DNA from: Pavona decussata
Taxonomy: Eukaryota
Assembly (NCBI GenBank): GCA_977016875.1
Contig: CDRNST010000070.1
Location: 62,001 to 126,000 of the forward strand
DNA: 64,000 nucleotides
Reading direction: 5' to 3'
A model generated the notes under the pieces. It had not been told where the DNA came from and searched no databases. It saw nothing but the letters and a program-made list of their open reading frames with translations. The position numbers were made by a program, and so were the translations under genes. Shown in pieces: positions 17,168 through 63,662 of this stretch. The stretch's first letter is position 1. Each line of letters opens with the position of its first letter.

Positions 17168-17303
17168 ATGCTCGACTCGTCCCCATTAAGAGGACTCTTG
17201 GTTTTATTGATCACAAGCCAAGTGTCTGCTAGGTCAAATACGACTGCTTCTTCAACTCATGATGTAAAGAAAAATGGAACTCAGGAGAGGCGTCAAAATA
17301 TAG
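17168..17303 (+). CDS. Giant gene: signal-peptide exon (GC donor)
   Basis: MLDSSPLRGLLVLLITSQVSA-RSNTT...QERRQNI; donor AG|GCAAGT, phase 1. Confidence 0.7.

Positions 17304-63662: not shown

Follow-up and report, generated by a model that had tools for sequence, protein, structure and literature searches.

Does the forward strand of this 64,000-nucleotide stretch of DNA from the coral Pavona decussata (contig CDRNST010000070.1, hereafter C70, positions 62001-126000; "the window") encode part of one giant extracellular protein and, if so, what could such a protein do? Coordinates given without a contig label are window positions. Between 24.9 and 63.0 kilobases (kb), stretches of 190-270 codons without a stop follow one another regularly on this strand; an original prediction had read them as VWA and LamG exons of a single very large, secreted, positively charged protein. 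The general description, i.e., a very large secreted-type modular protein of VWA and concanavalin A (ConA)-like lectin domains whose folded parts are extremely positive, is supported by the analysis described below. We think it probable, though well short of certain, that the window holds the opening third of a single, very large gene of the coral and that the product is a secreted, beads-on-a-string extracellular polycation that binds polyanions.

Domains and exon structure in the window

Pfam, structure, and homologue searches were all run exon by exon. On the forward strand of the window, Pfam identified eight VWA domains, two of them split by an intron, and 11 Laminin_G_3 domains (here called V and L modules and numbered in order). 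All eight V modules match the VWA family (PF00092) at 48-136 bits (cut-off, 23.8; expectation values [E], 1e-12 to 1e-39), and all 11 L modules match Laminin_G_3 (PF13385) at 48.6-71.5 bits (cut-off, 27.6; E, 1e-12 to 1e-19). The domain order put forward earlier, V1 L1 L2 V2 L3 L4 V3 L5 V4 L6 V5 L7 followed by V6 L8 V7 L9 L10 V8 L11, was borne out by Pfam throughout, with each domain at its predicted place. The label "LamG" needs narrowing: the modules belong to Laminin_G_3, a ConA-like family of the pentraxin/TSPN-like branch, and not to the classical Laminin_G_1 and Laminin_G_2 families (PF00054 and PF02210), which were absent at E <= 0.01 in all L exons. The only other Pfam match given by these exons was a sub-threshold one to Pentaxin.

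At every complete module, two bases separate a polypyrimidine-AG acceptor from the first full codon, and a GT donor follows one base past the last full codon. The complete modules are therefore symmetric phase 1-1 exons, with sizes of about 560 nucleotides for V and about 630 nucleotides for L. The modules and linkers of the window are as follows.

24964..25527, forward strand: V1 (VWA); Pfam 1.3e-34; metal ion-dependent adhesion site (MIDAS) intact, with DGSAS and TDG present
27757..28380, forward strand: L1 (Laminin_G_3); phase 1-1 exon, Pfam
29242..29871, forward strand: L2; Pfam, splice sites
31308..31880, forward strand: V2; Pfam; MIDAS motif degenerate
38010..38636, forward strand: L3; Pfam, splice sites
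38976..39614, forward strand: L4; Pfam, splice sites
41237..41803, forward strand: V3; Pfam; MIDAS intact; covered by exon-only RNA contigs
42566..43201, forward strand: L5; Pfam; RNA contig reaches the 3' end; AlphaFold model
43714..43767, forward strand: proline-rich linker exon, 54 nucleotides, phase 1-1; spliced RNA contig from run X5
44324..44866, forward strand: V4; Pfam, RNA; MIDAS degenerate; extra Cys
45301..45963, forward strand: L6; Pfam, RNA; extra Cys
46988..47292, forward strand: V5, first exon; Pfam, RNA; 3' boundary approximate
48019..48283, forward strand: V5, second exon; Pfam; 5' boundary approximate
49293..49928, forward strand: L7; Pfam, splice sites
50663..51217, forward strand: V6; Pfam; 39 Arg in 184 residues, including RRRRRR
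52022..52690, forward strand: L8; Pfam, splice sites
53295..53533, forward strand: V7, first exon; Pfam; 3' boundary approximate
53931..54302, forward strand: V7, second exon; Pfam
55400..56029, forward strand: L9; Pfam, splice sites
57317..57952, forward strand: L10; Pfam, splice sites
60506..61063, forward strand: V8; Pfam 1.5e-39; MIDAS motif intact
62316..62957, forward strand: L11; Pfam
63612..63662, forward strand: candidate Pro/Thr-rich linker exon, the last exon of the original prediction; 3' boundary approximate

As anticipated, collagen-type Gly-X-Y repeats are missing: no run of five or more triplets occurs in any forward frame of 17168-64000. The exons scanned contain no EGF, coiled-coil, or LCCL modules.

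In characterized VWA domains, the MIDAS completes its metal coordination with a carboxylate of the ligand. The DxSxS motif is intact in V1, V3, V5, V7, and V8, and all of these except the split V5 also retain TDG, whereas V2, V4, V6, and a few further V domains have a degenerate site. Across the whole array described in the next section, both motifs are intact in about 17 of 25 V domains, the metal site being predicted from the motif. Cys occurs near either end of the V domains, and the L domains share two invariant Cys, a pattern that would be expected of extracellular modules. An AlphaFold model of L5 (predicted local distance difference test score [pLDDT] of 91) shows a β-sandwich of 15 strands with one C-terminal helix, and Foldseek aligned this model to ConA-like jelly rolls with template modeling scores of 0.7-0.77. 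The best of these matches were to the lectin-like jelly-roll subdomain in the binding domains of clostridial neurotoxins; with an identity of 12-14%, they reflect a generic fold and were set aside as having no functional bearing. A feature search of the ESM Atlas returned generic LamG clusters only, and a sequence search of the PDB returned marginal matches only. In other proteins, the folds of the L modules and of WSC domains, which also occur at this locus, bind carbohydrate or protein.

The array beyond the window

The original prediction had left the gene unfinished at the window edge, and the array indeed runs 72 kb further. Searches with local profiles, covering C70:42001-216000, placed 28 L and 25 V modules on the same strand between C70:86933 and C70:198002, a distance of 111 kb, with no gap larger than 6.1 kb and no module on the opposite strand. 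No further basic-type module was found past the array up to C70:216000. The window thus covers about one third of the array, and the gene, predicted to be very large, would be about three times larger still than the window showed. V9 starts 0.8 kb past the window end, and the order after L11 is V9 L12 V10 V11 L13 L14 V12 L15 L16 L17 V13 L18 L19 V14 L20 V15 L21 V16 L22 V17 L23 V18 L24 L25 V19 L26 V20 L27 V21, then two WSC domains and an (Arg-Pro)n stretch, and finally V22 L28 V23 V24 V25. Both internal WSC domains pass the Pfam cut-off of 27.8 (31.0 and 28.2 bits). Hence, WSC, which had been described as a module of the head of the protein (where a WSC-like candidate scores just under the cut-off), is not exclusive to it.

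Most L-to-V and L-to-L introns contain a predicted phase 1-1 mini-exon encoding 9-40 residues; these linkers are Pro/Thr-rich near the start of the array and become increasingly Arg-Pro-rich distally. All 53 domain frames are open, and the copies are 35-85% identical to each other (for these identities, the halves of a split V domain were placed next to each other with an X in between). Three diverged copies of one unit can be recognized, namely L5-V4-L6, L7-V6-L8, and L11-V9-L12. If the array is a single gene, its product would have roughly 11,000-12,500 residues and a net charge of about +1,600 (28 x 31.5 + 25 x ~30).

Some 2.5 kb past V25, at C70:200526-202001 (L008:4526-6001), there is a non-basic Laminin_G_3 region, which recurs at the equivalent position in Tara coral scaffolds with 50-88% amino acid identity. 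It may be the C-terminal end of the gene or belong to a neighboring gene.

Extreme positive charge

The 19 domains of the window (3,839 residues) contain 533 Arg and 172 Lys versus 173 Asp/Glu, which amounts to a net charge of +532. Individual domains have a net charge of about +30 and an isoelectric point (pI) of about 11.4. An earlier count for L11 proved exact (34 Arg and 12 Lys vs 13 Asp/Glu in 213 residues), and the RRRRRR run reported for V6 is present. Over the whole array, the L modules average 14.5% Arg and pI 11.4 and the V modules 14.1% Arg and pI 11.5.

The P. decussata genome contains more than 130 L-type exons, and those measured fall in two composition groups:

L exons of the array on C70 (n = 28): Arg 14.5%, pI 11.4
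L exons on contig C78 (n = 6): Arg 20%, pI 12.0
L exons on contig C318 (n = 9): Arg 11.8%, pI 11.3
L exons on contig C180 (n = 15): Arg 4.5%, pI 8.4
Single L exons sampled from five other contigs (n = 1-3 each): Arg 4-7%, pI 5.9-9.8

The charge is a trait of a subfamily, since other L exons of the genome and the annotated animal relatives are not basic. The proposal that the Arg content is atypical of the family therefore holds for the L domains (about 4.5% Arg and pI of about 8.4 in other L exons of the genome); it is well supported for these and thinly for the V domains, for which there is little VWA background. Very large arrays of single-exon VWA domains occur elsewhere in the genome, at C251:736-955 kb, C82:772-941 kb, and C76:2.13-2.28 megabases.

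Conservation in other corals

An exhaustive profile search with the L module gave 20,259 matches. All of the basic ones are single-exon calls of 180-310 residues on unannotated ENA or Logan contigs. One contig (L032) comes from a second assembly of the same species and agrees at 99.99% identity; it confirms continuity across the window edge and is not independent. Scaffolds from Tara coral metagenomes are collinear with L21 through V25, including a WSC domain between V21 and V22, and a contig of a third species is collinear with V11 through L21. The Tara species and the third species share 73% nucleotide identity at L21, and both are distinct from the window species.

In both foreign-species sets, synonymous divergence (dS) is near or above 1. 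The Tara orthologues (n = 12 domains) show 76-88% amino acid identity at a dS above 1, with ratios of nonsynonymous to synonymous divergence (dN/dS) of 0.02-0.10, and they share 29-37 of about 32-44 Arg/Lys positions (~90%). The third-species orthologues show 69-83% amino acid identity and the same basic composition. The modules are under strong purifying selection, and the basic residues are kept position by position.

The part of the gene that corresponds to L5-L12 of P. decussata looks different in the third species, where at least six copies of an L11-V9-L12-type unit occur, some of them identical. On L042:9887-20424 (ENA ERZ26168041, ctg209655), this unit repeats with a period of 3,310 nucleotides and several copies are identical, so that the unit either expanded very recently or was multiplied by the assembly. 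Set against the three diverged copies in P. decussata, these copies indicate that the proximal part of the gene changes by duplication of the unit while the distal part is fixed.

Transcription and splicing

RNA contigs from two studies, runs X5 and X6, consist of exon sequence only and cover V3, L5, V4, L6, and the first exon of V5. Run X6 is from a second species; the species label of X5 is that of the runs that best match the DNA. One X5 contig is spliced from L5 to the 54-nucleotide exon at 43714-43767, which encodes a proline run, and from there to V4 at 44324. The second of these joints is a clean GT..AG intron, and the first lies three bases off a canonical GT/AG pair, an offset that is compatible with one mismatch in a contig of 95-97% identity. 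The contig shows that consecutive modules are spliced in phase over the stretch L5-linker-V4. Two further runs, X1 and X3, are labeled as metatranscriptomic coral RNA-Seq and were rejected as evidence of expression; their contigs span introns as well as exons at about 95% identity (41200-47199), which means that these libraries include material of a related coral, either DNA or RNA prior to splicing.

The candidate head of the gene

Upstream of V1, the following features make up a candidate head, in which the signal-peptide-like start was judged by eye.

17168..17308, forward strand: candidate first exon, with an ATG and then a hydrophobic start that resembles a signal peptide
17702..17780, forward strand: small Cys/Pro-rich exon with flanks ...tttttgcag and gtacgt; no Pfam match
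20728..20969, forward strand: opening exon of the WSC-like domain in the head; bounded by ag and gtaagc, in phase 1
21322..21352, forward strand: second WSC exon, truncated by the gap; acceptor ...ttttctcag; codes for the end motif G-G-P-W-G-N
21353..21575, no strand: assembly gap (N), which begins ten codons into the exon at 21322, within the last WSC motif
21576..22020, forward strand: (GGTAGT)n microsatellite of about 445 nucleotides to the right of the gap; coding status ambiguous
~22729..23206, forward strand: acidic exon ending in C-P-V-C; phase-1 donor gtaagt

The head WSC copy (PF01822), which an intron divides and the gap cuts short, scores 27.6 bits against the cut-off of 27.8. In the internal WSC copies, G-G-P-W-G-N is continued by x-V-Y, so at least a few more residues of the domain are expected to follow. 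The microsatellite would encode (Ser-Gly)n in one frame and (Val)n in another; the third frame gives stop codons. Because the gap cuts an exon and the adjoining repeat reads differently in each frame, the frame and continuity across 21353-21575 are not fixable.

The acidic exon with a terminal CxxC, part of the architecture proposed earlier, was found, with 39 Asp and Glu within an open stretch of 208 residues and C-P-V-C at its end. Its phase-1 donor fits the phase-1 acceptor of V1, and the head would be joined to V1 on the grounds of strand, position, and compatible intron phase. A small paralogue on the same strand just upstream (8735-13002) has a signal-like start, a Ser/Asp-rich piece, the motif C-P-P-C-R-K-F, and one V domain in three exons that is about 40% identical to V1; it contains an N gap of its own (9664-9872). 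Since this paralogue has C-P-P-C-R-K-F before its V domain, the CxxC exon is supported as the real partner of V1. In a tblastn comparison of the paralogue with the head, the V domain and a repeat element matched, and the short head exons did not.

Repeats and mobile elements within the locus

A short dispersed repeat occurs at 17385-17546, 13834-13997, C70:199682-199888, and on L002, as well as in several introns and intergenic spots. One of its frames resembles a conserved peptide (...AKCKVFIMKI.FHS...), and it could pass for an exon. An open stretch of 419 codons in a head intron (18623-19879), Cys/His-rich and Lys/Glu-rich and with no Pfam match, seems to derive from part of a mobile-element protein and not to belong to the gene. 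A (CAT)n tract at 28385-28450 adjoins the donor of L1 and would add about 20 His if that donor were skipped. The V2-L3 intron holds a long terminal repeat (LTR)-type retrotransposon on the minus strand, antisense to the gene (32147-36522), with a single open frame of 1,316 codons that contains aspartic protease, reverse transcriptase, RNase H, and integrase domains; it looks recently inserted, as its flanking 134-nucleotide direct repeats are 99% identical. At the end of the window, 63828-63999 contains an element of about 85 nucleotides that occurs in more than 60 copies of 89-98% identity on many contigs, frequently with two inverted copies some 200 nucleotides apart, in the style of miniature inverted-repeat transposable elements.

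Relation to known proteins

No characterized or annotated full-length match to this architecture appeared in the profile and literature searches, in line with the earlier remark that it was not recognized as that of a characterized protein. Searches of the literature on cnidarian proteins with Laminin_G_3 and VWA domains, on coral skeletal proteomes, on the matrisome of sea anemones, and on the pedal disc of Exaiptasia yielded no V/L-alternating or similarly basic protein.

The closest annotated relatives of the L modules, at 185-200 bits per domain against the L profile, are multi-Laminin_G_3 proteins of amphioxus, Lingula, and Nematostella (e.g., XP_078610005.1, XP_019624450.1, XP_013421969.1, and XP_032240504.2). 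These uncharacterized proteins share conserved core motifs with the coral L modules but combine two to five L domains with other module types, lack the V/L alternation, and have 3-6% Arg and a net charge that is negative to about neutral. Tandem extracellular VWA domains are found in collagens VI, XII, and XIV, the matrilins, and cochlin/vitrin, all of them matrix connectors. The coral array resembles these in its N- and C-terminal Cys and MIDAS motifs but has no Gly-X-Y, alternates VWA with Laminin_G_3, and has a pI of about 11.5, whereas theirs is near neutral.

Two further families combine VWA with other binding modules. The molluscan shell proteins Pif/BMSP are secreted, linked to a carbonate skeleton, and mentioned as having a Laminin_G-type domain (PMC11291548). 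Their defining chitin-binding domains and acidic mineral-binding part were not found in the coral exons scanned, and the coral protein is strongly basic and far larger. SVEP1/polydom is a large cnidarian and bilaterian matrix protein that has VWA together with a pentraxin-type ConA-like domain (PMC12549020); the Sushi, HYR, EGF, and ephrin-receptor-like modules that define polydoms are absent from the coral exons scanned.

By analogy, the nearest documented functional precedent may be found in the temporary adhesion of the flatworm Macrostomum lignano, which uses the secreted proteins Mlig-ap1 and Mlig-ap2 (5,407 and 14,794 residues) (PMC6410801). Mlig-ap1 has an extreme positive charge and a charge-dependent cohesion that heparin neutralizes or blocks, and its Lys/Arg content hindered tryptic mass spectrometry (PMC6410801). 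The likeness, which includes huge size and the presence of lectin and other matrix-type modules, is functional only: there is no sequence relationship, the von Willebrand modules of the flatworm protein are of type D, and its charge sits in low-complexity Lys/Arg repeats, whereas that of the coral protein sits in 53 folded VWA/ConA-like domains and in Arg-Pro linkers.

Proposed mode of action

The proposed protein would begin with a head (signal-like start, Cys/Pro segment, WSC, acidic stretch, and CxxC), followed by 53 globular modules and two internal WSC domains, with short Pro/Thr- and Arg-Pro-rich linkers connecting the modules into a flexible chain. Outside the cell, such a multivalent polycationic chain could bind and cross-link polyanions such as sulfated glycans, mucins, acidic Asp/Glu-rich matrix proteins, and charged surfaces. 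Three modes of binding may contribute: (i) bulk electrostatics, at about +30 per module and with more than 50 binding modules; (ii) lectin-type binding through the L and WSC modules; and (iii) capture of ligand carboxylates through metal by the approximately 17 V domains with a complete MIDAS. The outcome would be a cohesive or adhesive matrix. Judging from composition and domain types, polyanion binding in adhesion or matrix is a plausible role.

A more specific version seems doubtful to us, but deserves mention. It holds that the protein, with about 12,000 residues and a charge of about +1,600, is the polycationic partner of highly acidic matrix proteins and sulfated glycans, and that charge drives them to form a condensate or scaffold where tissue meets skeleton or at the interface of settlement; the protein would be conserved in stony corals and would have been overlooked because gene finders fragment the gene and trypsin shreds the protein.

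Weighing the evidence

Several points weigh against one gene with one adhesive role. The RNA supports just one chain of junctions, and RNA depth is low in both informative runs (2-6x contig depth). The link between head and V1 consists of strand, position, and phase only, and the assembly gap interrupts the head. The putative polyanion role derives from composition and domain types. The parts of the text of an Acropora skeletal proteome paper that were searched contain no VWA/Laminin_G protein of this kind; this absence is weak evidence, because tryptic mass spectrometry poorly detects Arg/Lys-rich proteins (PMC6410801).

Two other points concern the unity of the gene. The putative single transcription unit spans 111 kb, and the WSC pair found between V21 and V22 is similar to the module in the head, so that a second gene might start there. 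The array could accordingly consist of two or more tandem genes that have been merged, with a boundary at, e.g., this WSC pair, each encoding a smaller basic V/L protein. The occurrence of WSC in both the head and the interior of the array would fit such a boundary; the small head-plus-V paralogue just upstream demonstrates that the family does form tandem genes, and shorter basic arrays exist elsewhere in the genome (C78 and C318). However, no exon with an ATG and a signal-peptide-like start was spotted by eye within the array, phase-1 splice sites flank every complete domain exon with no terminal-exon pattern, and the first internal WSC exon begins with a Pro-rich linker, as other internal modules do. 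Domain order is one-to-one across the suspect region in two other species, and the RNA contig splices consecutive modules. We therefore consider a merger of tandem genes unlikely, albeit the most serious of the alternatives.

Returning to a single gene, its product may have another function. Proline/arginine-rich antimicrobial peptides resemble the (Arg-Pro)n and PRP-type linkers, which are long in the distal part of the array. With these linkers, the extreme positive charge, and the lectin-type L and WSC modules, the protein could be a surface or mucus defense factor, i.e., a lectin-studded polycation that clumps microbes with anionic envelopes or is cut into cationic Pro/Arg-rich antimicrobial fragments. 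Immune effectors usually evolve fast, though, and the domains are here conserved one-to-one with dN/dS of 0.02-0.10; moreover, the charge resides mostly within folded domains, and there is no processing signal. It is rather improbable in our judgment.

Still less probable is a structural role in cnidae (spirocysts or nematocysts), which the original prediction had listed beside settlement glue and tissue-skeleton anchoring. Their capsules contain the polyanions poly-gamma-glutamate and chondroitin, with which polycationic domains could pair. The positive charge, the extracellular-matrix-type modules, and the Pro-rich linkers would suit such a component, but neither minicollagen-type Cys-rich domains nor Gly-X-Y repeats were seen, and no such protein was found in the cnidarian literature searched. 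Finally, that the exon array has decayed or has no function, or is an artefact of repeats collapsed or expanded during assembly, could account for the gap and microsatellite in the head and for the identical repeat units (possibly an assembly effect) in one other species, but this reading is close to refuted by 53 open domain frames in copies just 35-85% identical, purifying selection between species, a spliced RNA contig, and a second same-species assembly that agrees at 99.99% across the window edge.

Significance

As a type, modular extracellular matrix and adhesion proteins are well known; what is remarkable in the large, secreted polycation favored here is its size, the alternating V/L design, and the conserved extreme positive charge. 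In public protein sets, the gene appears only as single-exon fragments, and it is absent from annotated sets. Its Arg/Lys-rich composition would in addition hide the protein from tryptic proteomics, so that proteomes of skeleton, mucus, and footprints may be blind to it. Two evolutionary regimes appear to coexist in one gene, in that the distal half is fixed domain by domain at dS above 1, while gain and loss of an L-V-L unit mark the proximal part. Research into the matrix and adhesion of corals has centered on acidic proteins, and a giant conserved polycation would, if true, be the missing counter-charge; ideas of charge-driven assembly in corals, such as coacervation, cohesion, and anchoring to skeleton or substrate, would then become testable.

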